Shown here one piece after another: positions 14,611 through 33,021 of a stretch of DNA of 64,000 bases (its first letter is position 1; every line of letters begins with the position of its first letter). The translations under genes and the position numbers were made by a program. Origin of the DNA: Macrostomum lignano (taxonomy: Eukaryota). Under the pieces are notes generated by a model that saw nothing but the letters and a program-made list of their open reading frames with translations, was not told the DNA's origin and searched no databases. The stretch lies in NCBI GenBank assembly GCA_002269645.1, contig NIVC01000406.1:322724-386723 (forward strand). Reading direction: 5' to 3'.

Positions 14611-15035
14611 TCAGCATTGGCGCCATCTAGTTTTTTTCGTCACCCAATTAAATTTATTGCCCTTTTGGTAGCACTGGCGCCCATAAGAATAAATTTCTTT
14701 GCAAACTACTGGCACAGTGTCCCACACTCTCCCCTCCAGCCCCTGAGTACACTCAAAGCCCCTCGTTGGCTTGACAACAGAGTAAGAGAATTCTCAGCAG
14801 CTCACTGAGTTCGCTGCCCCTGGCATCTTGATGAAAGACACCTGCTGAGGAGGGGTAGCCGCTGGCAGTGCAAACTTTTGCACACTGTTCTCCGCTGCGC
14901 ATTGTCGAGTGTACACCCGCCTGCGACTCGGTGGGGTTGTCATAAAACAGACGCCCTGCATTGTCCGAAATGCCCAGTGGTTCAAGTCTTCTTTCTGACA
15001 GGCATCTTGCTGAAATTTTGGCCACTAACTGCAGC

Positions 15036-18000
15036 ATGGCCGTTGTCAAGTACAAGAGTCAGAACTACAAGGTGAGTAGTTGATCGAATCTCAAATATAG
15101 TAAGAAAGCGAGCATGTGTTCTAAAAAAAATTTGTGGTAAAACTTGACTTGATACGATGGATTAAAAAGCTATTATGAATCCGTTTAGACGTCACTTGAA
15201 TTGGATTTCTAGCGAAATTGAGCTTTTTAATAAATTCAAATAAATATTTGAAGTGTTGAGTTCTCGCGGAGGCTGCTAATATAACTAATGGGGGTCCTTG
15301 GGTGGAAGTTTGAGTAGCCGAGAGTTATCAGAGAATCCAGGAGTCCATGACATTCTACCGGTATAGTAGTTTGCAGAAATCCGCAGCAATCCATGGCAGT
15401 CCATTGCAGTCCATGGCAGTCTATTGCAGTCTATGGCAGTCCATGGCAGTCCATTGTAGTCCATGGCAGTCCATAGTAGTCTATGGCAGTCCATGTCAGT
15501 CCATAGTAGTCTATGGCAGTCCATGTCAGTCCATAGTAGTCCATAGCAGTCCATGTCAGTCCATAGTAGTCCATAGCAGTCCATGTCAGTCCATAGTAGT
15601 CCATAGCAGTCTATGGCAGTCCATGTCAGTCCATAGCAGTCTATGGCAGTCCATTGTAGTCCATAGTAGTCTATGGCAGTCCATGTCAGTTCATAGTAGT
15701 CTATGGCAGTCTATAGTAGTCCATGTCAGTCCATAGCAGTCTATGGCAGTCCATGTCAGTCCATAGCAGTCTATGGCAGTCCATGTCAGTCCATAGCAGT
15801 CTATGGCAGTCCATGTCAGTTCATAGTAGTCTATGGCAGTCTATAGTAGTCCATGGAAGTCCATAGTAGTCCATGGGAGTCCATTACAGTCCATGCTGAA
15901 TATTCCCACCCCAAACTGACTGTCCCGCTCCGGCAGACGCTGCGCCGGAACCACCTCACCTTCAGCCGGAAGTTCGAAGACCCTGAGTTCCCTCTCGAGG
16001 CCGGGCCCGGCATCGACAACGACGGCGTTGAGTGGCTCCGCCCGTCGGAGCTCGCCGTGGGGCCGCGCCTGCTCTCGGACGGCGTGTCCGGCGCCGATGT
16101 GGTCGGCAGCGAGCGCGGCGCCTCGGCCTGGTTCGCCACCGCCTGCTCCGTCCTGACGGCGCGGCCCAGCCTGCTGCTCCAGCTGATCCCCAGCTACGCC
16201 GACCAGGACTATGGCACCCAGTTCCACCCCGGCATCTTGCAGTTCGAGTTCGGCCGCCAGGGCCGCGCCTACCGGGTGGTGGTCGATGACCGACTGCCCT
16301 CGCGGGGTGGCCAGCTGCTCCGCTGTCACTCCGATGACGGCGCCGAGTTCTGGAGCGCTCTGCTGGAGAAAGCCTACGCCAAGTGAGTGTCCGGGAAGTG
16401 TCCGGGAAGTGTCCGGGAAGTGTCTGAGAAGTGTCTGGGAAGTGTCTATAAAATGTCCCGGAAGTGTCTTTGTAAGTATCTCCAACATTTTTGGGAAGTG
16501 TCCAGGGAATGTCTTGGAAATGTCCCGGTATATGTCAGAACGTGTCCGAGATGTTGTCGAGAAGTGTCCAGAAAGTTTCTAGAAAGTACGAGTAGCTTGA
16601 GTAATGCCCGGGTAGTGTCTAAGAAATGTCCAGAAGTGTCATAGAAATGTCTTTGAATTTGTCTGAAGATGTCCGTTAAGTGTCTAGAAAATATCTGGAA
16701 AGTGTCAGGACAGTTGCTTGAAATTGTCTGTGAAGTGTCCACGAAATGTCTAGAAATGTCTATAAAACTGTCTATAAAATGTCCGGGAAGTGTCCGGGAA
16801 GTGTCCGGGAAGTGTCTCATAAGCGTCTCACCGATTCAGCTGATGCAGGACTGGCCGCAACAACCTTGCTTACCAACTCCGCACCATCCCGCCCGTCCCA
16901 GACTCCATGGTGGCTACGCGGCTCTCGCGAACGGCCGCATCGCCGACGCCATTGCCAGCTTCTGCCGGGGCATCCCGGACAGCTGGGACCTCCGACATCT
17001 GCAGGCTCAGGTGGACTTGACGAACCCCGTGGCCCGGGATCGGCTGGCGCGAATTCTGCAGAGCTTCGTTCGGCGTGACAGCATCCTGCTGTTCAGCCTT
17101 CGGGTGAGTCTCTCGGGTGATGCAGCTGGAGTGAGTCTCTCAGGTGATGCAGCTGGAGTGAGTCTCTTAGGTGATGCAGCTGGAGTGAGTCTCTCAGGTG
17201 ATGCAGCTGAAGTGAGTCTCTCGGGTGATGCAGCTGGATTGAGTCTCTCAGCCTGATGCAGCTGGAGTGAGTCTCTTAGGTGATGCAGCTGGAGTGAGTC
17301 TCTCGGGTGATGCAGCTGGAGTGAGTCTCTCGGGTGATGCAGCTGGAGTGAGTCTCTCAGGTGATGCAACTGGAGTGAGTCTCTCAGCCTGATGCAGCTG
17401 GAGTGAGTCTCTCGGGTGATGCAGCTGGAGTGAGTCTCTCAGGTGATGCAGCTGGAGTGAGTCTCTCAGCCTGATGCAGCTGGAGTGAGTCTCTTAGGTG
17501 ATGCAGCTGGAGTGAGTCTCTCGGGTGATGCAGCTGGAGTGAGTCTCTCGGGTGATGCAGCTGGAGTGAGTCTCTCAGGTGATGCAACTGGAGTGAGTCT
17601 CTCAGCCTGATGCAGCTGGAGTGAGTCTCTCGGGTGATGCAGCTGGAGTGAGTCTCTCAGGTGATGCAGCTGGAGTGAGTCTCTCAGCCTGATGCAGCTG
17701 GAGTGAGTCTCTCGGGTGATGCAGCTGGAGTGAGTCTCTCGGGTGATGCAGCTGGAGTGAGTCTCTCAGGTGATGCAACTGGAGTGAGTCTCTCAGCCTG
17801 ATGCAGCTGGAGTGAGTCTCTCGGGTGATGCAGCTGGAGTGAGTCTCTCAGGTGATGCAGCTGGAGTGAGTCTCTCAGCCTGATGCAGCTGGAGTGAGTC
17901 TCTCGGGTGATGCAGCTGGATTGAGTCTCTCAGCCTGATGCAGCTGGAGTGAGTCTCTTAGGTGATGCAGCTGGAGTGAGTCTCTCGGGTGATGCAGCTG

Positions 18001-21000
18001 GAGTGAGTCTCTCGGGTGATGCAGCTGGAGTGAGTCTCTCAGGTGATGCAACTGGAGTGAGTCTCTCAGCCTGATGCAGCTGGAGTGAGTCTCTCGGGTG
18101 ATGCAGCTGGAGTGAGTCTCTCAGGTGATGCAGCTGGAGTGAGTCTCTCAGCCTGATGCAGCTGGAGTGAGTCTCTCAGGTGATGCAGCTGGAGTGAGTC
18201 TCTCGGGTGATGCAGCTGGATTGAGTCTCTCAGAGTGATGCAGCTGGAGTGAGTCTCTCGGGTGATGCAGCTGGAGTGAGTCTCTCAGGTGATGCAGCTG
18301 GAGTGAGTCTCTCAGGTGATGCAGCTGGAGTGAGTCTCTCGGGTGATGCAGCTGGAGTGAGTCTCAGTCTGATGCAGCTGATAAGTTAAGAGTAACCTGA
18401 TGAGCAGTGGTGTGGCCATCAGTAACGCGGCTGTCCCGAACTCTCAGGGAACATTAACTGAGTGCTAATCTATAAAAGTACATCCCGTACTAACTTACCT
18501 ACTACAACGTTTCGCATCTGCCACGCTAAATATATATAATTAAGCATAGAGAGCTGCCTACTTGCAGCAGGCAGCCAGGAAGGCAGACATTTTGCTTTTT
18601 TGTTGAAATTCGCAGAACGCCCTTGTTTCTTTCCCTGACTGCTGCCGGAATCGCGAGGTCGCAATTCTTTTCTTAACCGAGATCTCGCCAGAATTCAATT
18701 TTGGAAAATTAAATTACAAGCTCAAGGCGCCTCTGGTTCAGCCCTACCCCCCCCCCTATTGCTGCCACCGCCTCAGGCAAGATGCAGCCTTTGAGAGTGG
18801 GGGCCTCAGCTGTTCTGCTCAATCTGTCCTTGAATTTCTGACTCCCTGCAGCTCGCAGCCACCTCAGCCCTCAGCTCTCGCCCATGCCGCATGTGATACT
18901 CGAAATCTCACGCTGACGCATAGCTGACGCATAGCTGACGCATAGCTGACGCATAGCTGACGCATAGCTGACGCATAGCTGACGCATAGCTGACGCATAG
19001 CTGACGCATAGCTGACGCATAGCTGACGCATAGCTGACGCATAGCTGACGCATAGCTGACGCATAGCTGACGCATAGCTGACGCATAGCTGACGCATAGC
19101 TGACGCATAGCTGACGCATAGCTGACGCATAGCTGACGCATAGCTGACGCATAGCTGACGCATAGCTGACGCATAGCTGACGCATAGCTGACGCATAGCT
19201 GACGCATAGCTGACGCATAGCTGACGCATAGCTGACGCATAGCTGACGCATAGCTGACGCATAGCTGACGCATAGCTGACGCATAGCTGACGCATAGCTG
19301 ACGCATAGCTGACGCATAGCTGACGCATAGCTGACGCATAGCTGACGCATAGCTGACGCATAGCTGACGCATAGCTGACGCATAGCTGACGCATAGCTGA
19401 CGCATAGCTGACGCATAGCTGACGCATAGCTGACCTTTTTGCTTCATTATTCAGCCCGAGGGCAAAGGCAGGCGGACGGGCGACTACACAGCGGATAATT
19501 TAGTCTATGGCCGGGGCTACCTGCTCAGCGATGTGCAGCAGGTGCGGCTGAAGGACGGCTCACCAGTGTGGCTGCTCAAGCTGCAGACGGCGCATTTTCA
19601 TGACAACAGCGAGTGGAAAGGGCCGTGGCGTGACGGGTGAGACTGGCTTCTCATCGCAACCCTGGGATCATTTTATTCACACGTCAGTGCCTGAAATCCG
19701 CCAAAAAATATTCCCTTTCAGCGGGCCCGAGTGGGGCCAGCTCGACATTGAATCGGCCAGCCGGGTGAATCACTGGTTTAAAGATGACTGCGTTTTTTGG
19801 TGAGTGCCGGAGACTCTGGAATAACTAATAGATGTCATTCGCAACATGTTCACCTAGCTACTGTTTTTTAGTAGCTTTTTTAGTATTATAATAATAAAAT
19901 AGCTGGGTTTTCTTATGTACATGACGATTTACACTGGGAATGGCTGCATCTGTTCTGATGTAAACTGGGAATGGCTGCATGTTTTGATGTACACTGGGAA
20001 TGGCTGCATGTTTTGATGTACACTGGGAATGGCTGCATGTTGACACCTGTATCTGTGTTACACTGAAAAGCTGCATGTCCCGGACACTCCAGGATCAGCC
20101 TCACGGACGCGATGGCCAGGTTCAGCGACCTGGACATGAGCCTGGCTCCCGACGGAAGCCGCAACTGGAAGCGAGTCTGCCTGGAGGGCCGCCGCGGCGC
20201 TGGCAATCCGCCGACTGAGCCGCAGTACCTCTTGCGCATCCGCGGCGACGGCTTCCAGACGGTGACGGTCTGTCTGGAGCAGGGCGGGCCGGAGGCGGCC
20301 TGCAGACCCGACCTGCTGGCGCCCATGGGCCTGGAGCTGCTGCGGGCTGAGGACAACCGCAACACCCGCCTGCCATTGGGTGCCGGGCCGCCGTCCGCGC
20401 GGCTGGTGGCGCGAGCGGCGATGGAGCGCCGGGCGGTGATCACCCTGGGGGCCAGCCTGCCGCCTGGGAGCTACGTACTGCTGCCGCAGTTCGGCGATGC
20501 TGAGATCGACTTCACCATCAGGGCCTTCAGCCGGCTGAAGTTCCAGCTCAGGTTAGTCAGTCAGTCAGTCAGTCAGTCAGTCAGTCAGTCAGTCAGTCAG
20601 TCAGTCAGTCAGTCAGTCAGTCAGTCAGTCAGTCAGTCAGTCAGTCAGTCAGTCAGTCAGTCAGTCAGTCAGTCAGTCAGTCAGTCAGTCAGTCAGTCAG
20701 TCAGTCAGTCAGTCAGTCAGTCAGTCAGTCAGTCAGTCAGTCAGTCAGTCAGTCAGTCAGTCAGTCAGTCAGTCAGTCAGTCAGTCAGTCAGTCAGTCAG
20801 TCAGTCAGTCAGTCAGTCAGTCAGTCAGTCAGTCAGTCAGTCAGTCAGTCAGTCAGTCAGTCAGTCAGTCAGTCAGTCAGTCAGTCAGTCAGTCAGTCAG
20901 TCAGTCAGTCAGTCAGTCAGTCAGTCAGTCAGTCAGTCAGTCAGTCAGTCAGTCAGTCAGTCAGTCAGTCAGTCAGTCAGTCAGTCAGTCAGTCAGTCAG

Positions 21001-22677
21001 TCAGTCAGTCAGTCAGTCAGTCAGTCAGTCAGTCAGTCAGTCAGTCAGTCAGTCAGTCAGTCAGTCAGTCAGTCAGTCAGTCAGTCAGTCAGTCAGTCAG
21101 TCAGTCAGTCAGTCAGTCAGTCAGTCAGTCAGTCAGTCAGTCAGTCAGTCAGTCAGTCAGTCAGTCAGTCAGTCAGTCAGTCAGTCAGTCAGTCAGTCAG
21201 TCAGTCAGTCAGTCAGTCAGTCAGTCAGTCAGTCAGTCAGTCAGTCAGTCAGTCAGTCAGTCAGTCAGTCAGTCAGTCAGTCAGTCAGTCAGTCAGTCAG
21301 TCAGTCAGTCAGTCAGTCAGTCAGTCAGTCAGTCAGTCAGTCAGTCAGTCAGTCAGTCAGTCAGTCAGTCAGTCAGTCAGTCAGTCAGTCAGTCAGTCAG
21401 TCAGTCAGTCAGTCAGTCAGTCAGTCAGTCAGTCAGTCAGTCAGTCAGTCAGTCAGTCAGTCAGTCAGTCAGTCAGTCAGTCAGTCAGTCAGTCAGTCAG
21501 TCAGTCAGTCAGTCAGTCAGTCAGTCAGTCCACCCTCACTGTTGCAGCCCTCTGACGTCGTCAAGGACGCAGGGGTCGGGCTGCCGGGCCCGGAGCCACA
21601 AGTCGGTGTCCCGCCTGGTGGTGCAACGGGTGACAGGGGTGGCGGCCTGGCTGAAGTGCCCGCCAGCGGAGGTGAAGATCAAGCTGCGGGTGGCCTGCCC
21701 GAACTCCAGCATCTCGGACTGGTACAGTCGGTACTATTATGCCGAGCCGGAGCAGGGCGACACGTTTGAGACGGACCTTCGACTGCTCATCCATCGATAC
21801 AAGCTGGGCGAGCCGGTGAACATTGATGTGAGATGGCAGGGTCGCAGATTACAGTGTTCACCGATGCTTTGATGTAATCTGAAGATTATTAGTGCAGATG
21901 TCGGCTGCTTACCGGAGCCAGTAGCCAATAAGAAGTCACAGAGAGGGGCAAGGCAAGCGGAGCAGAGACAGGATTAGACGTCAGCCAATCAGCGCAGACC
22001 TACTGGGGTCTGGGGGTGGGGGCTCAATCACTCAGGATTGTGTTTATTGGACAAGGCTATGCAGAGCCAATAGCAGCAGGCGAGCAGGCCTGCAGCAGGA
22101 GAGAAACGACAACCAATCAGTGAGCGCTGAGGGTGACTAGTGTATAAAACGGACTTATAAAAGTGAGGAGGGGCCTCCACGGGGGTGACATGCTGGCACG
22201 ACGTGGAGGGCGAAACAAAAAAGTGCAGAATGTACGTAGGAGAGTCCTGAAACCCTTAATGTACATGGAATTTTGTGGAATGTGCTAAAGAGAATCTGAA
22301 AAAAAACAATTTTAACTCCGCATAACCAGTAAAGTACTGTGTGAAATTTACGCAAGATAATATTGAAGCCCTTAGCTTGTATATCAGAGGTTTGTTGCTT
22401 TGGGTAGCAAATGGATGCATTAGTCATATTCAGAGCATATCCAAACGTACTACTGAATGAGTAGTCATCCTTTGCACAGACCCTACTAGGCTATTTTGAG
22501 CACAGTGCTCAGCCCCAGTCAGAGCATTGATTGTCGAAGTGGAATCCGCAGGCCCAGTGCCGAGCGCGCAGCGAACCGAGCCGTCTAACAAGCCGGAAGC
22601 GATTCCCCCAAACCCTTTGCCACCCTGCCAGCAGGCCCCGTGATTGCCCCCGAGTTTCTTGGCGGCACAAAACAGCA

Positions 22678-22708
<31 letters not shown>

Positions 22709-22719
22709 AACGGAGAAAG

Positions 22720-22768
<49 letters not shown>

Positions 22769-25020
22769 GCGTGAGTCCTCGGACTCCAAGAAGTTCTCCC
22801 GGCGGAGTCTCCGACCCAGAAAAATCAAATTGGAAGGTCCAGCTTGAGACTGCGGGCCAGGCCTTGTAATTAGGGGGGGGGAGCGGGGGCTGCACAGGCA
22901 GTAACAGGCAGCGCTAATCCAACCACTTGATTTGCCTAATTCGCAAACTGCTCAGCCGACTCTGCCCAGCGGCCCTCACGCCCAAGTTGCCTCCCCCTCC
23001 AACGTAAAGCGAGGGTGCTTGAGAACCTCCTTCCCGGCCGTCCCCTGCTGCTCCGCTCCGGTTCTGCGGTCGGGCGGCCTGCGATCCCCCTGTCTCCTCC
23101 ACGCACCGGCCCGCTGTTTCTGGCCTCTCTGCCTCCGCTCCAGCGCTGCATTTTTCATTGATTTTGCCCTCCCGGCAGCTGACGGGTCTCACGTTCCACA
23201 CTGAAGGCTTGGAGGGCGGGCGGGCGCGGCCTCTCCTTGCTGCGTTGCGGCGCTGCCTGCCTTCTTCTGTCGCTCTTCCACCCCCCCAGAAATTCTCTGC
23301 CTAAAAACGGTCCAGCAATTTCTCGTCTTCCAGGACGAGAGAAACGTCTTGTCCCTTCGTTTTCTTTCAGCTTTCTTGCCTTAGCGCAGTTTCCTACAAC
23401 TGCAGAACCGGCTGGCTCTGCGGGGGAATTCTGTAGGCTTTTCTCTGCGCCTCCGCCGGGGCATCGGGGCCAGTGTGGCGGCAGCTGCTCTCGACACCAC
23501 AAATTGTTCAGCGGTGGGAAATGCCGGCCTAAAAGTATTCAAAGCTCCTTCCATCATAGCTGCTAAAAAGCAGTTAACCTACCTATGCCCGTATGCACAG
23601 GTGTGTTTGCCTGGGCAGGTGGGTGGGCGACGTTGATCCTCTGGGAATTCCTTCGCCTTGGTCCAGCTGGGAGGCTGGGGACTCAATGGACTCGGCGGGA
23701 GCATGACAGCACTACTCACTATGGTACTCGCAGCACCCAAACTAAAGAAGTTACAGCAGTAACTTCAAAGAGGTTGCAGCCTAGTGGTTAGAGCATTGGA
23801 CTCACGAGTGAAAGGTCGGGGGTTCGATTCTCGACCAACTCCAAACAATTTGTGTCCTTTGTTCAACCAGCTGTATAATGGGTGCTAGCATTAGCTGGGG
23901 CAATTGAGGGTGTGTGGCGACACCCCAGTCCTTGGACTGAGCAGCCGTACGCAGTCTTCAGATGCGTTGCGCAATAGCTGAGCTGTCGGTTGCACATCTG
24001 CCCATTAGAGCGGGGTAGGTGCAATCAATTCTTATTAATTATTATTATAATAGAAAATTATTTTGAAAAGCCGGCTTCAGATGAACTCAACTGAGGATCT
24101 CCTGCACTGTTTTGTCCTCTTAAAGACGATCTTAAAGGTAGAGAGGGTTTTTTCCCGTTTTTCTCTTGAGGTAATAGAACAAATTTTAAGCTGAATAAAC
24201 ACAAATAAAAAATTACGGAATCGATCAGGCAAATGATTTACCATTTAGTTATACGGCTACCTCTTGAAAAAAGCCTTTGGCATGCACAAGATCAGAACCC
24301 GATGCTAGTGCAAGTCTAGTACAGAACCCGATGCCTCATGCTAGTGCAAGTTCAGTACAGAACCCGATGCCTCATGCTAGTGCAAGTCCTGTACAGAACC
24401 CGATGACTCATGCTTGTACAAGTTCAGTACAGAACCCGATGCCTCATGCTTGTACAAGTTCAGTACAGAACCCGATGCCTCATTCTTGTACAAGTCCAGT
24501 ACAGGACCCGATGCCTCATTCTTGTACAAGTCCAGTACAGGACCCGATGCCTCATTCTTGTACAAGTCCAGTACAGGACCCGATGACTCATGCTAGTGTA
24601 AGTCCAGTACAGAACCTGATGCCTCATGCTAGTGCAAGTCCAGTACAGAACCTGATGCCTCATGCTAGTGCAAGTCCTGTACAGAACCTGATGCCTCATG
24701 CTAGTGCAAGTCCAGTACAGAACCTGATGCCTCATGCTAGTGCAAGTCCTGTACAGGACCTGATGCCTCATGCTTGTACAAGTTCAGTACAGAACTCCTC
24801 TCGGTAGTTCAAGCTGTCAGTCTATCAACCAACTATACCACCGCAGGTGTACTACAGCGCAGTGGGGTCCTACACCAAGTCCCAGGTCGGCCAGGTCAGC
24901 ATCGGCGAGTCGGCGGCGCCCACCGGCCAGGAAGCGGCTCTTATTGGCCAGGACGGCCAACCAATCGGAGTCTCGCTGCATTGCGCGCTGTGCACGGTGG
25001 AGGACTGGGAGGAGATCTGA
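15036..25020 (+). CDS. CAPN5: Calpain-5/6 (TRA-3)-type protein, CysPc-CBSW-C2 architecture, predicted catalytically inactive, 618 aa
   Basis: Exons 15036-15071, 15937-16382, 16902-17103, 19455-19636, 19722-19799, 20093-20551, 21548-21827 and 24847-25020 are phase-compatible GT-AG (1857 nt). Motifs: KYKSQNYKTLRR..FEDPEFP, VVVDDRLP, EFWSALLEKAYAKLHGGY, EWKGPWRD, DDCVFW, domain III PGSYVLLP, and a C2-like tail (LIHRYKLGEPVNIDVYY...GQVSI) typical of CAPN5/6. The symbol is a family-level assignment. Confidence 0.88.
15380..15895. repeat. 10-bp-based degenerate satellite (cagtccatgg/tagtctatgg) in calpain intron 1
   Basis: Directly visible. Confidence 0.9.
16383..16820. repeat. Degenerate 11-bp satellite (gtgtccgggaa) starting at the calpain intron 2 donor
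   Basis: Perfect copies at both ends, decayed in the middle. Confidence 0.8.
17104..18380. repeat. 27/28-bp minisatellite in calpain intron 3, each unit starting GTGAGT
   Basis: Unit gtgagtctctcgggtgatgcagctgga, ~47 copies; the first unit is the real donor. Confidence 0.97.
18912..19433. repeat. Perfect 11-bp minisatellite (gctgacgcata)n
   Basis: ~47 copies ending ~20 nt before the intron 3 acceptor at 19454. Confidence 0.98.
20553..21529. repeat. (TCAG)n microsatellite filling calpain intron 6
   Basis: ~240 perfect units. Confidence 0.98.
22679..22765. repeat. (GA)n microsatellite
   Basis: Directly visible. Confidence 0.9.
23771..24050 (+). mobile_element. tRNA-derived SINE (family 1) in calpain intron 7
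   Basis: A-box tagtggttagag, B-box ggttcgattc, a body shared with 46475-46770 (ctgtataatgggtgctagcattagctgggg...ttcagatgcgttgcgcaatagctg) and an (ATT)-rich tail. Confidence 0.8.
24295..24790. repeat. 33-bp minisatellite, ~15 copies
   Basis: Unit cagtacagaacccgatgcctcatgctagtgcaagt and variants, just upstream of the last calpain exon. Confidence 0.93.
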
Positions 25021-27187: not shown

Positions 27188-30100
27188 ATGGTGGACTACA
27201 TCAACAAGTTCGACATCGAGCTGGCCAAGCCGGTCTGGTACGCCGGCGAAGAGCTCACTGGTCACATAATCGTGGACAGCACGGAGAACTTCAAGGTGAG
27301 TCGATTGAGCTTTGAGAGCTGCAGATGGCGTTTGAGCAGCTGGCTTTAATTGATGGCTTTCGTCTGTGATGAGAGAGATGGCGCCATGCGTGTTATAAGG
27401 CGCCATGCGTGTGTTACAGGGCGCCATGCATCTGTTTTGAGGCGCCATGCGTGTGCTAGGGGGCGCCTTTTGATGCAAAGGAGCGTCATGGGGTGCAGGG
27501 GAGTGCCATGGGGTGCAGGGGAGTGCCATGGGGTGCAGGGGAGTGCCATGGGGTGCAGGGGAGTGCCATGGGGTGCAGGGGAGTGCCATGGGGTGCAGGG
27601 GAGTGCCATGGGGTGCAGGGGAGCGCCATGGGGTGCAGGGGAGCGCCATGGGATGCAGGGGAGTGCCATGGGGTTCAGGGGAGTGCCATGGGGTTCAGGG
27701 GAGTGCCATGGGGTGCAGGGGAGTGCCATGGGGTGCAGGGGAGTGCCATGAGGTGCAGGGGAGCGCCATGGGGTGCAGGGGAGCGCCATGGGGTGCAGGG
27801 GAGCGCCATGGGGTGCAGGGGAGCGCCATGGGGTGCAGGGGAGCGCCATGGGGTGCAGGGGAGCGCCATGGGGTGCAGGGGAGCGCCATGGGGTGCAGGG
27901 GAGCGCCATGGGGTGCAGGGGAGCGCCATGGGGTGCAGGGGAGCGCCATGGGGTGCAGGGGAGCGCCATGGGGTGCAGGGGAGCGCCATGGGGTGCAGGG
28001 GAGCGCCATGGGGTGAAAAGGAGCGCCGCAGGGAAGCGCCCTATCCAACTGTATCGCCTTCAACTGCCCAAGTGGCATCACCAGTTTAGTCAGAAATTTT
28101 CACATCCGGTCTGCAGGTGTGCAAAAGCAGCAGTTTTGCTTCCACCTCGTGGCAACGCAGGAGGCCTGGATAACCGCGATGCAATCAGCTGCAAGCCAGA
28201 AATCAGCACAGGGGGCACAGGAAAGCCACAATAAATGCCGTTTATGTCTGCCCTACCCTCGGTCGCTCATTTCGGGCCCAGGGCTGTTTGCCCTCCGTGT
28301 CGGAGCATTGCAGCTGCTCTGCTTTCTTCTCTCTGTTTGCCCACCTGCCGAGAGAGTCTGCATACTCGTACCTGTTCGGCTCCCTCCTCAGCAACGTCTC
28401 TGTCGTCTTTCTTTCCTTCTTGGCCTCATTTTCTTCTCTCGCTCTGTCCGTCCGCTTAAGTGGACAGTTGGAACAGAAGGTTTCGCTCTCCGCCTCTCTT
28501 CCTCCAGCTGTCTCCTCTCCTCTCTTCTCCCTCCTCATCAATTATGCCCTGGTTGGGAGTTGATCCCTACACCGCAAGCCCAGTAGCCAAGCAGGTGCTG
28601 CCCCCATCCTGCTGCCATCGGATGCCCGGCTGCAGTGAGCGATATTGGGATTAGTTGAAGTTTGGCGAGTGGAAAATCGAATGTCCTTGGACTAGTCACT
28701 AATGACTAGGATTAGTCACCCAATGACTTGGATTAGTCACCCAGTGACTTGGATTAGTCACCCAATGACTTGGATTAGTCACCCAATGGTGGATTAGTCA
28801 CCCTATGGTGGATTAGTCACCCAATGACTTGGATTAGTCACCCAATGGTGGATTAGTCACCCAATGACTTGGATTAGTCACCCAATGACTTGGATTAGTC
28901 ACCCAATGGTGGATTAGTCACCCAATGGTGGATTAGTCACCCAATGACTTGGATTAGTCACCCAATGACTTGGATTAGTCCCCCAATGGTGGATTAGTCA
29001 CCCCTTGATGGATTAGTCACCTATTAACTGTGATTAGTCACCTATTAACTGTGATTAGTCACCTATTAACTGTGATTAGTCACCTATTAACTGTGATTAG
29101 TCACCTATTAACTGTGATTAGTCACCCAGCCCCTGCACTGAAGTCGCCACAAAGTGCTGCTGCAGAGCCTTCAAAACCAGAAGTCGTTTATTGCAATTCA
29201 GCATCTCAGCTCCATCAGCTTGCCCGCTCAGAACCCTCATGAAGCCCGATTGGTTTCCTGGACGCCAAAAAACAAATAATTACAAGTGTCAGGCACTCAG
29301 GGGGCGCAGGAGAGGTAGGCGAGCTCTGGAGTGGCCCCGTCTACTCGAGGGCGCGTCACTTGAGCAGGTGAGAGCCGCGATCCCCAGTTTGACGCGCTGA
29401 TCCCGTCCGGTTTTGTCACGGCGTGCGGCGAGGCACGAGGATGATGGGCGAGGCCACAGCGGACACCTGGGCGTGACAGAACCCCTCCTTCTCTGCTTTT
29501 CTCCTCTCCTTCTTGACTCCCCCCCCCCTGCTTGCCGCAAGATAAGCTGGAGGCGGGCCCGCCCCCCGCTGCTTATCCAGCTGAACTGGGCGGCCATGCG
29601 ATGGCAAAGCCGATAATAGAGGTGGGGGGGGGGGGGCTGGGGAGCCCTGCCGCTGTCACGAGCTTGCTGTCGGCTGCAGAGCCTGTTTAGCTGAAGCTGT
29701 CAGAAGCCGGCTGACCCCGCCCCCGGTCCCATCCGACCTGACAGCGAGGTCCCTTGTTTCCCGGTAGAGCCTCGGCCGGAGCTGGATTTCCCAGACTTAG
29801 TTTGGGTCCTGGTTGCACTTTAAGCCGCAGAACAGCTATGAAGTTTTCTTACATTCAAAAGCTATTCAGTTTTTGTCTTTCAGAAATTTCTGTCCGCAAT
29901 CAATAAAAGCACTTCTCTCCCAACCCACTCTTTGCTCCCCTTGTCTTTCCTCTCCTTTCTTCTCCTACCTCCTATCCCTACCTCCTCTCTCTACTTCTTT
30001 CTCTACCTCGTATCTCTACCTTCTCTCCCTACCGGGAGCACGAGAATTGCCCGCAGACGAATTGCGCGCCGAGGTTTGTCCGCAATGCTTTTTTCCTGCA

Positions 30101-33021
30101 GAGCACTTAGCCACAGCTGTAGCTCGCAAATGAATAGCTGACAGATGCACCCTCAAGAAAAATATGCGTTTAATGTATGCAGTTACCATCGAAACGTTTT
30201 GATTCTTAAATCTTTATTAAGACTTACAAAGCATTAGGGGGGGGGGACAATGCAGAAAAAATCTGCCGCGTGACCAAATGCACTGCAGGACCTCCCTAAG
30301 TCCTTCTAAGTCCTAGGCTCGTATTGTCGTATCCGGTCTCAAACCATCTGCGAAGGTAGGTAGCTCCGATGAAGCTCAGAATCTGGGACTCAATCAGCTT
30401 TGATTTTTCTCTTCGTTGTCCCAGAGCTGATTGGGATTCGATGTCCCTAGAAGCAGGCGGGCCGCTGCCGGGGCGGAGATCAGAGATGAAGCCAAAGGCG
30501 GTAATTAGTTCTACTCGAATCGCAGCCCCCCAGAAGACACGCGCAGGTATCTCCTGGATAAAAAGTCGCACAGCTCCTCGTCCGTTCCGAGTTCCTGTTG
30601 CACTGAGAGCAATTTTGGCTGTCTCAGGTGATGCTGCCAGGTCTAATTAGGCCGCCTCCCCATCCAGCTTCCTCTGTGTCCCCGCGGATCTCCCAGTAGC
30701 CGGGGCGCAGCGCATGACACAGTGCGGGATTCAGTGCCGTACCGGCTAAGCATTCAACAGGGCAGGTGGAAGACAGTTGACAAACTTGGCGCTAATTAAT
30801 TATTAATGAGCGCAGGACATACAAGAGAGAGTCTGGAACTCTCCATCCTGTCATCCTTTGCGTGGAAATTCTCTGCTCTGACGGCTCAGCCATCTCTGGC
30901 TTGATTGGTGGAAATTTGCCTAACATTTATCCCAAATCTGCCGGATGAGCCGCCCGAAGAAGTCTGGGCCCGAGTTGATTGATTCCCAAGGCTGGGAAAT
31001 CAATTAGGGGGGGGGGGGCAGAGCACAGCAAGTTTGGCGCTGCGAGCCACTTTTCCCCTCTCTGCCGGCTGCGCGAAAATGCGAATCCTGAAATTCGATT
31101 GGGGAATCGACAAGACAAGCGCTGGAGCAGCTTTGAGTGCTCAGCATTGGCGAAGTCGAGTGTGCCAGAAGTGACTGCATGAGCGGTCCCCGAATGGATT
31201 GAATTGTGTGCTGCTTTGCTGACTGAGAGCCATCTGAGTCAGTGCGGTTCTGTAGCGATCTAATCTGTGAGATGGATTAGCAATCCATTCTATTCCTGCA
31301 TCCATGATAGGCTAGATTAGCAATCCATTCTATTCCTGCATCCATGATACGCTAGATTAGCAATCCATTCTATTCCTGCACCCATGATAGGCTAGATTAG
31401 CAATCCATTCCATTCCTGCAGCCATGATAGGCTAGATTAGCAATCCATTCTATTCCTGCATCCATGATACGCTAGATTAGCAATCCATTCTATTCCTGCA
31501 CCCATGATAGGCTAGATTAGCAATCCATTCCATTCCTGCAGCCATGATAGGCTAGATTAGCAATCCATTCTATTCCTGCATCCATGATAGGCTAGATTAG
31601 CAATCCATTCTATTCCTGCATCCATGATAGGCTAGATTAGCAATCCATTCTACTCCTGCATTCGTGATAGGCTAGATTAGCAATCCATTCTATTCCTGCA
31701 TCCGTGATAGGCTAGATTAGCAATCCATTCTATTCCTGCATCCATGATAGACTAGATAAGCAATCCATTCTATTCCTGCATCCGTGATAGGCTAGATTAG
31801 CAATCCATTCTATTCCTGCACCCATGATAGGCTAGATTAGCAATTCATTCTATTCCTGCATCCATGATAGGCTAGATTAGCAATTTAATATTTTCATCAT
31901 TAGCTAGATAAATCTTACTTCCGAAACCTGCTTTCCAGGTGCGCGGAATTCGCGTGCACCTGCGCGGCCGCGGACACGTCGAGTGGAAGGTAAGCCGCAG
32001 CGGCGAGCGGCACTCGGTCAAGGAGGACCAGGTGTACCTGGACGCCAAGACCACCGTGTGGGGCATCGAGAAGGGCCTGGAGCCCGGCGGCAACGATGCC
32101 CTGCCCATCCTGCCCCGCGGAGCGCACAAGTGGCAGTTCAGCTTCCCGTTGCCGGAGTCCGCGCTGCCGCCGAGCTTCGAGAGCCGCACCTGCACGGTTC
32201 GATACTACCTGCGCTGCATCATCGATGTGCCCTACGCCTCCAACCCCAGCCACATCACCTACTTCACCGTCATCGGACCCTACTCAGACTGCATGGAGAC
32301 CCGCTACCTGTGCCCCACCTGCATGGAGATCTCCTCCCACACCTGTCCCTGCCTGCCGCTGATGAAGCCGCTCCGCCTCTCGGGCACCCTGGAGCGCAGC
32401 GCCTACTGCTGCGGCGAGCACATCAAGCTGCGCTGCCAGGTGGCCAACGACACTGACAGGCAGCTGCGCATCAGCGTGAAGCTGGTGCAAGACTGCTGCT
32501 TCTTCATCAACCAGGGCGTCCTGGGCATCTGCAAGGAGTTCCAACACGTGGCCTTCGAGTACCGCTCAGATTTGATCCGAGCCCGGCAGTCGGTCGATTG
32601 GGATCTGTCCAGCTTCCTCCTACTGCCGCCGGTGCCACCGACCATCCCGGAGGGCTTCTGCCGGCTCATGCAGATTGGCTACACCCTGCGGGTGAACCTG
32701 GTCAGGGACGGCAAGGCGCCAACCAACCTCTGCCTGGACTTCCCCTTCACCATCGCCACGCTGCCCTTCCGCATCCCAAATGTTGCCGTGCCGCCTGTGG
32801 TGTTCCAGACCGCGGTGGAGAGCGTTGAGGGCGGCATGTACATCAGCCCAGCCTTCACCCTCGGCCAGGTGTACGACGGCACGGAGGGCGCGGAATCCGG
32901 CCTTCTGTACCAGCCCGTGTACCCCACCGTGATGAAGAATCCAGCAAAGCTGGAGCGCCAGCGGCTGGCCAGCATCGCCAATGGACTCAACGACTGCGCC
33001 GAGAAGGTGTCCTCTGTGTGA
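27188..33021 (+). CDS. arrd-17: Alpha-arrestin / arrestin-domain protein, most like nematode ARRD-17, 396 aa
   Basis: Exon 1 27188-27295 (MVDYINKFDIELAKPVWYAGEELTGHIIVDSTENFK, AAG|GTGAG) and exon 2 31939-33021 (CAG|VRGIRVHLRG...). Arrestin_N/C motifs LPPSFESRTCTVRYY, LERSAYCCGE, DFPFTIATLPFRIP and VEGGMYISPAFTLGQVYDG match ARRD-17 as I recall it. Confidence 0.9.
27487..28012. repeat. 20-bp G-rich minisatellite, ~26 copies
   Basis: Unit catggggtgcaggggagtgc / ...gagcgc in the arrestin intron. Confidence 0.96.
28690..29125. repeat. 20/21-bp minisatellite (gattagtcacccaatgacttg, then gattagtcacctattaactgt)
   Basis: Directly visible. Confidence 0.92.
31275..31884. repeat. 40-bp minisatellite, ~15 copies, reverse complement of the 26441-26708 array
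   Basis: Unit gattagcaatccattctattcctgcatccatgataggcta. Confidence 0.96.

Follow-up and report, generated by a model that had tools for sequence, protein, structure and literature searches.

A calpain gene with a replaced active site

The 64,000-nucleotide stretch analysed here (hereafter the window; contig NIVC01000406.1 of assembly GCA_002269645.1, from the free-living flatworm Macrostomum lignano) carries an eight-exon calpain gene on the + strand at window positions 15036–25020, which corresponds to the locus Mlig010786.g3. We consider it very probable that this gene encodes a maintained and transcribed pseudoprotease of the CAPN5/CAPN6/TRA-3 type, one of three near-identical copies, which was inactivated stepwise and acts by binding. 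Among invertebrates, it offers a clean case of a calpain whose entire active site has been lost and which is nevertheless under strong purifying selection.

An active calpain peptidase has a Cys-His-Asn triad and an oxyanion Gln, and 226 of 262 aligned calpains have Q-C-H-N in the four corresponding columns. The window protein has G-A-R-T there, as do its two sister copies. The motif that should hold the oxyanion Gln and the catalytic Cys is GSERGASAW, which begins at amino acid (aa) 69, with Gly at the Gln position and Ala76 (16126–16128) at the Cys position. The His motif reads GRGY, with Arg248 at 19512–19514, and the Asn motif reads QTAHF, with Thr273 at 19587–19589 and, in the same 262-calpain alignment, His in place of the gating Trp of the NPW motif. 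A previous reading of this DNA, made from its letters without database searches (the sequence-only reading), had reported the loss of all three triad residues; its coordinates were exact, and the alignment agrees with it. When the CAPN5 core was aligned with phmmer instead, the N-P-W of the Asn motif fell in a gap, and no Asn stands at the catalytic position under either alignment. With Cys, His, Asn, Gln and gating Trp replaced by Ala, Arg, Thr, Gly and His, respectively, the protein is, as judged from its sequence, a pseudoprotease (non-peptidase homologue), and since all five active-site residues are replaced, hydrolysis by the calpain mechanism is excluded.

The calcium-binding residues of the protease core were compared in the same way. 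The calcium-bound core of mu-calpain reportedly uses six acidic ligands at two calcium sites (D106, E185, E302, D309, D331 and E333, rat mu-calpain numbering). E333 is a calcium ligand that also forms the activation salt bridge. By this reported list, five of the six ligands (the equivalents of D106, E185, E302, D309 and D331) are kept in the window protein, and the equivalent of E333, the Glu of calcium site 2 and of the switch, is the Val of the exon 5 motif KDDCVFW.

Gene copies and purifying selection

The assembly holds three copies of the gene, namely g1 on NIVC01002405.1, g2 on NIVC01003112.1 and g3, the window copy. All three Mlig010786 coding sequences (CDSs) are intact and 98.9–99.2% identical to one another. 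At a pairwise synonymous divergence (dS) of about 0.03, the ratios of non-synonymous to synonymous divergence (dN/dS) were 0.05, 0.10 and 0.14. Across the three copies, 26 codons are variable, 20 of them synonymously and six non-synonymously, compared to roughly 25% synonymous changes under neutrality (binomial P = 4e-8). All 14 splice sites are kept in each copy; the introns are 3–8% diverged in their alignable parts and very different in length. These comparisons support the view that Mlig010786 is kept under purifying selection. Together with the intact open reading frame (ORF) and the inferred transcription of the gene (see below), they identify the locus as functional and not as a pseudogene. 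The sequence-only reading had proposed that selection retains a non-proteolytic role, which is supported by the three intact copies, the range of dN/dS and the transcript-based annotation; it had also named a dN/dS near 1 as the mark of a decaying duplicate, and the values obtained refute such decay.

Gene structure and transcript support

The window is eukaryotic in character, with GC-rich exons and introns filled with repeats. All exons of the calpain gene lie on the + strand. Exon 1 (15036–15071; aa 1–12, MAVVKYKSQNYK) holds the probable true start codon, and exon 2 (15937–16382) encodes the PC1 half of the protease core including GSERGASAW. The end of PC1 and the start of PC2 are found in exon 3 (16902–17103), followed by exon 4 (19455–19636; PC2, with GRGY and QTAHF) and exon 5 (19722–19799; end of PC2). 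Exon 6 (20093–20551) encodes the beta-sandwich (CBSW, or calpain domain III), exon 7 (21548–21827) a linker and the first part of a C-terminal C2-like beta-sandwich, and exon 8 (24847–25020) the end of this C2-like domain and the stop codon. All seven introns have GT...AG boundaries, and the donor reads GTGAGT in five of them. The joined CDS of 1857 nt (618 codons) has 85% G+C at third codon positions (GC3) and no internal stop, in agreement with the earlier claim of an intact gene with eight exons in frame.

The translation matches GenBank PAA83752.1 (“hypothetical protein BOX15_Mlig010786g3”) with 100% identity, and the deposited gene also carries the label “calpain catalytic domain-containing protein”. 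The GenBank model shares all eight exons and differs solely in its start at an upstream in-frame ATG (14970), which adds 22 aa (MPSGSSLL...). In copy g2, the upstream stretch (14970–15035) carries a 1-nt indel causing a frameshift, and the GenBank model of g2 has 618 aa and begins at the second ATG. The true start is probably the ATG at 15036, which is more likely than the one at 14970 because of this indel and because the N-terminus MAVVKYKSQNY matches those of the paralogue (see below) and of CAPN5-type proteins in the alignment. Given the indel and the g2 model from the second ATG, the annotated N-terminal extension of g1 and g3 is probably 5′ untranslated region.

The GenBank annotation of the assembly is a genome-guided RNA-seq transcript set, produced with StringTie/TACO and filtered by expression (Wudarski et al. 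2017, PMC5730564), and the exon structure therefore has transcript support. Transcription of the gene family is thus supported by the RNA-seq-based method of annotation as a whole, and not read by read. Scans of the whole 64-kb window detected no Rfam family and no tRNA.

A paralogous family and the putative order of losses

The only other close relative found anywhere is a paralogous family in the same genome, which comprises Mlig011844.g1/g2 and Mlig012140.g1 (651–654 aa, 38–42% identical to the window protein). Two further candidates for dead paralogues (P0159 and P0194) were rejected, as both are models of the Mlig011844 family from an older assembly and carry frameshifts. The paralogue has nine exons, and seven of its eight introns share the positions and phases of the seven introns of the window gene. 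Both families have Cys replaced by Ala and His by Arg, both have lost the switch Glu (Ile in the paralogue), and the paralogue, with a dN/dS of 0.08–0.09 at a dS of 0.06, is likewise under purifying selection. Unlike the window gene, the paralogue keeps the oxyanion Gln, the Asn (its columns read Q-A-R-N) and the gating Trp, has a full-length CBSW that is recognised by Pfam (E = 8e-14) and carries its eighth, additional intron in the C2 region. Identity between the families is 53% in PC1, 40% in PC2, 37.5% in the CBSW and 28% in the C2 region; between-family dS is saturated (1.27), and the corresponding omega of 0.46 is an upper bound only. In relative-rate tests, the window lineage had more unique changes than the paralogue with five of five outgroups, significantly so with the chiton (69 versus 27, P = 2e-5) and Lottia, and not significantly with fish, platypus and Trichuris.

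The simplest reading of these comparisons is that the window gene is not alone in lacking Cys and His, a loss that predates its split from Mlig011844/012140; the inactivation would be old, because the paralogue already carries Cys to Ala and His to Arg. In a first step, these two replacements and the loss of the calcium-switch Glu would have preceded the duplication that gave rise to Mlig011844/012140. In a second step, Gln, Asn and Trp would have been lost in the window lineage, where the CBSW was shortened and more unique changes accumulated than in the paralogue. As an intermediate within the same genome, the paralogue would thus record which residues disappeared first and which later.

Domain architecture

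Pfam Peptidase_C2 (PF00648; MEROPS family C2) matched residues 25–330 of the window protein (E = 1.1e-52, 295 of 297 profile positions), and the nearest solved structure by sequence was the human CAPN5 protease core (6p3q, E = 2.3e-49). An AlphaFold2 (AF2) model built on 77 homologues reached a predicted local distance difference test score (pLDDT) of 83 and a predicted template modelling score (pTM) of 0.76. When this model was searched with Foldseek, it matched full-length m-calpain (3bow) over 522 columns and the CAPN5 core with a TMt of 0.84. By the homology of its CysPc core (Pfam, 6p3q, Foldseek), the protein is a member of the calpain superfamily.

Beyond the core, a full-length alignment with CAPN5, CAPN6 and “calpain-5-like” proteins extends to the C-terminus, and the C-terminal sandwich of the AF2 model, encoded in part by exon 7, matched the C2A domains of dysferlin and otoferlin (Foldseek TMt 0.69–0.72, E 3e-5 to 1e-4). 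On the isolated C-terminal segments, Pfam Calpain_III reached only E = 0.18, below threshold, and the CBSW was not recognised, in part because the beta-sandwich lacks, close to its start, about 30 aa that are present in the paralogue and in CAPN5/6. Pfam C2 gave no match on these segments, and no Pfam EF-hand was detected in the window protein. Overall, the model and, for the CBSW, the full-length alignment support an architecture of protease core, CBSW and a predicted C2-like domain, the C2 identity of the last being structural. The sequence-only reading had described a full CysPc-CBSW-C2 architecture, and this stands by alignment and by AF2/Foldseek, except that the CBSW is about 30 aa short and that the C2 domain has diverged too far for Pfam to recognise it.

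Phylogenetic placement

Trees were built by neighbour-joining (NJ), a distance method, with 300 bootstraps. The split between the classical calpains (plus Elysia) and the CAPN5/6-type calpains together with the Macrostomum proteins was recovered in 100% of bootstraps, as was a clade containing only the Macrostomum proteins. Among the proteins of the CAPN5/6 side, this clade branched off first (85% bootstrap), a basal position to which its long branch may contribute. The tree places the window protein with the CAPN5/CAPN6/TRA-3 type and not with the classical calpains; by NJ the Macrostomum clade falls outside the vertebrate CAPN5 and CAPN6 group, and the protein is not an orthologue of CAPN6. 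The triad residue that eutherian CAPN6 lacks is, according to the sequence-only reading, the Cys, and non-eutherian CAPN6 sequences read Q-C-H-N. These sequences and the separate Macrostomum clade support the earlier suggestion that the loss was independent of that in eutherian CAPN6, and with Cys, His, Asn, Gln and gating Trp all replaced, the window protein is also the more complete pseudo-enzyme that had been suggested.

When 1.84 billion cluster representatives were scanned exhaustively with HMMER, no protein above 41% identity was found outside M. lignano. A high-scoring Prochilodus sequence (P0007) was rejected as a close relative, as it is a fused tandem classical calpain. We also observed that many mollusc and annelid calpain-5-like proteins have Thr, Ala, Ser, Gly or Phe in place of the catalytic Cys and that some lack the His as well; this spiralian set (P0009, P0012, P0013, P0014, P0020, P0066, P0141, P0147, P0173) may represent an under-described group of dead calpains in Lophotrochozoa.

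Proposed function and alternative explanations

By analogy with CAPN6 and other dead calpains, the window protein would work by binding and not by cutting. It could serve as a scaffold or as a trap for partners, or it could compete with active calpains for substrates, with the protease-like cleft and the surfaces of the CBSW and C2 domains as putative binding sites. It may still respond to calcium, because five of the six core ligand residues survive, and through these ligands and the C2-like domain it might act as a calcium- or membrane-responsive adaptor. Several points weigh against this interpretation. The scaffold mechanism is itself inferred from the analogy, and expression or phenotype data on Mlig010786, Mlig011844 and Mlig012140 were not found in M. 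lignano full texts and supplements. RNA-seq reads are hard to assign among copies that are 99% identical, and the transcript support is consequently not specific to the window copy. Without an orthologue from another species, selection can be gauged only at a shallow dS of 0.03 and at a saturated dS above 1.2 (omega at most 0.46). Finally, the AF2 input alignment consisted of CAPN5/6 homologues, which biases the model to the family fold. Our literature searches returned no relevant paper on Macrostomum and calpains, and none that discusses Mlig010786.g3.

A decaying duplicate, that is, an unprocessed pseudogene that has merely not yet acquired a stop codon, would also explain why the whole active site is gone, why the CBSW has lost about 30 aa and why the C2 domain is not recognised by Pfam, and the excess of unique changes over the paralogue (69 versus 27 with the chiton, three other outgroups being not significant) points in the same direction. 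However, all three copies are intact over 1857 nt, their synonymous to non-synonymous ratio of 20:6 departs from the neutral ratio of about 1:3 (P = 4e-8), and every splice site is kept while the introns diverge and change length. The GC3 of 85% has also been maintained, the gene models are RNA-seq-based, and the ORF persists although the loss of the triad is older than the saturated dS of more than 1.2, so that we regard decay as very unlikely. We find it barely credible that the protein is still a protease using alternative residues, such as a nearby Ser, Cys or His. A Ser does precede the Ala in GASAW, a conserved Cys lies seven residues past Ala76 (ATACSVL), His residues flank the former Asn position (TAHFH), and five of the six calcium ligands are retained. 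Nevertheless, nucleophile, base, Asn and oxyanion Gln have been replaced together, the calcium-switch Glu is lost, and the downstream Cys is the non-catalytic one that is conserved in active calpains. To our knowledge, there is no precedent for a calpain that works without its Cys/His pair.

The loss could also predate Macrostomum if the protein came from a single ancient lineage of inactive spiralian calpain-5-like proteins to which those of molluscs and annelids, which are among the best non-flatworm matches, also belong. The catalytic Cys is lost in Lottia and Mya (both Thr) and in Mercenaria and Ylistrum (both Ala), Cys and His are both replaced in Haliotis (Ser, Leu), Bradybaena (Gly, Gln) and Dimorphilus (Gly, Phe), and the G-x-G-Y form of the His motif is common to these proteins and to those of Macrostomum. 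Yet NJ groups the Macrostomum clade with them in only 0–3% of bootstraps, the Cys is still present in Solemya and in the chiton Liolophura, and where it is gone, different residues have taken its place. Repeated, independent losses are therefore the better reading, within the limits of a distance tree and of possible long-branch artefacts; a single ancient loss seems quite improbable to us. A broader reading, to which we give a small chance, is that the two Macrostomum families form a stepwise-inactivated pair with a lineage-specific, calcium-responsive binding role, for example as a regulator or decoy of the worm’s active calpains in regeneration or reproduction, or else come from a deep spiralian clade whose dead calpain-5-like members share a single, conserved non-proteolytic role. 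If the calcium-responsive pair were true, the window family, in which none of the active-site residues is left, would represent a second change of function. On balance, a maintained pseudoprotease that was inactivated stepwise and acts by binding remains our preferred reading.

Intronic repeats and neighbouring genes

Several introns of the calpain gene consist of tandem repeats whose first unit starts at the donor site or no more than 3 nt from it. The minisatellite of intron 3 (17104–18380, + strand; 27-nt unit, 47 copies) starts exactly at the exon 3 donor, and each of its units begins with GTGAGT. The array of intron 2 (16386–16817) begins within 3 nt of the donor, and nearly the whole of intron 6 is a perfect (AGTC)244 microsatellite (20555–21530, + strand). 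Further perfect or near-perfect intronic minisatellites are found at 18912–19434 (11-nt unit, 47 copies, 100% identity) and 24302–24795 (36-nt unit, 14 copies). Unit numbers vary strongly across the three gene copies, with 244 (window), 26 and 113 units of AGTC and with 43, 13 and 18 units of GTGAGTCTCT. The true splice sites are kept despite these varying unit numbers, and in intron 3 the spliceosome uses the first of approximately 47 tandem donor-like sites.

Downstream of the calpain gene lies an arrestin-domain gene (approximately 27188–33021, + strand, with a large exon at 31939–33021), whose 396-aa GenBank product contains Arrestin_N (E = 1e-22) and Arrestin_C (E = 2.5e-20). Copy g1 has this gene on its downstream side as well, and the copies are therefore segmental or whole-genome duplicates and not retrocopies; nothing beyond the calpain gene was called in the g2 flank examined. 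The upstream neighbour encodes a 543-aa product on the − strand that reaches up to approximately 9916 and runs beyond the 10-kb flank, and no Pfam domain was detected in it.

Comparison with known calpains

The role of dead calpains, CAPN6 included, is poorly understood, and since M. lignano is tractable by transgenesis and RNA interference, the window gene and its paralogue form a pair that could be used to ask what such proteins do. The advance is modest: the gene was already in GenBank, and its features of note are an active site lost in its entirety, the intermediate paralogue and the tractable host. Inactive calpains are already known and numerous across eukaryotes (PMC3315469, PMC11387712), which leaves the general view unchanged. 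Joyce et al. counted 344 calpain-like proteins in which one or more triad residues are missing, including 100 from animals, and named CAPN6, CalpC of Drosophila, CLP-3 and CLPR-1 to -4 (PMC3315469); an inactive calpain of Rhodnius patterns the embryo (PMC11387712). Such proteins are of the same kind as the window gene in that their triad is incomplete or absent and in that they are conserved and, where tested, functional, but those other than CAPN6 belong to other subfamilies (classical or other atypical) and other lineages, and none is an orthologue of it.

The window protein resembles CAPN5, CAPN6 and TRA-3 in its order of CysPc, CBSW and C2 domains, in having no EF-hand domain, in its length (618 compared to about 640 aa) and in a similar N-terminal motif. 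It differs from them in its identity of only 26–31%, in forming the longest and earliest branch, in its replaced active site, in a CBSW that is about 30 aa shorter and in a C2 domain that Pfam does not detect. In function, the nearest precedent is eutherian CAPN6, which lacks a key triad residue and, as cited in PMC3315469, stabilises microtubules without proteolysis; the Rhodnius calpain is a further precedent. Both are of the CAPN5/6 type, both are without the catalytic Cys, and by analogy both would be kept for a non-proteolytic role. In contrast to CAPN6, where a key triad residue is missing, the window protein has lost five active-site residues, and it did so independently.

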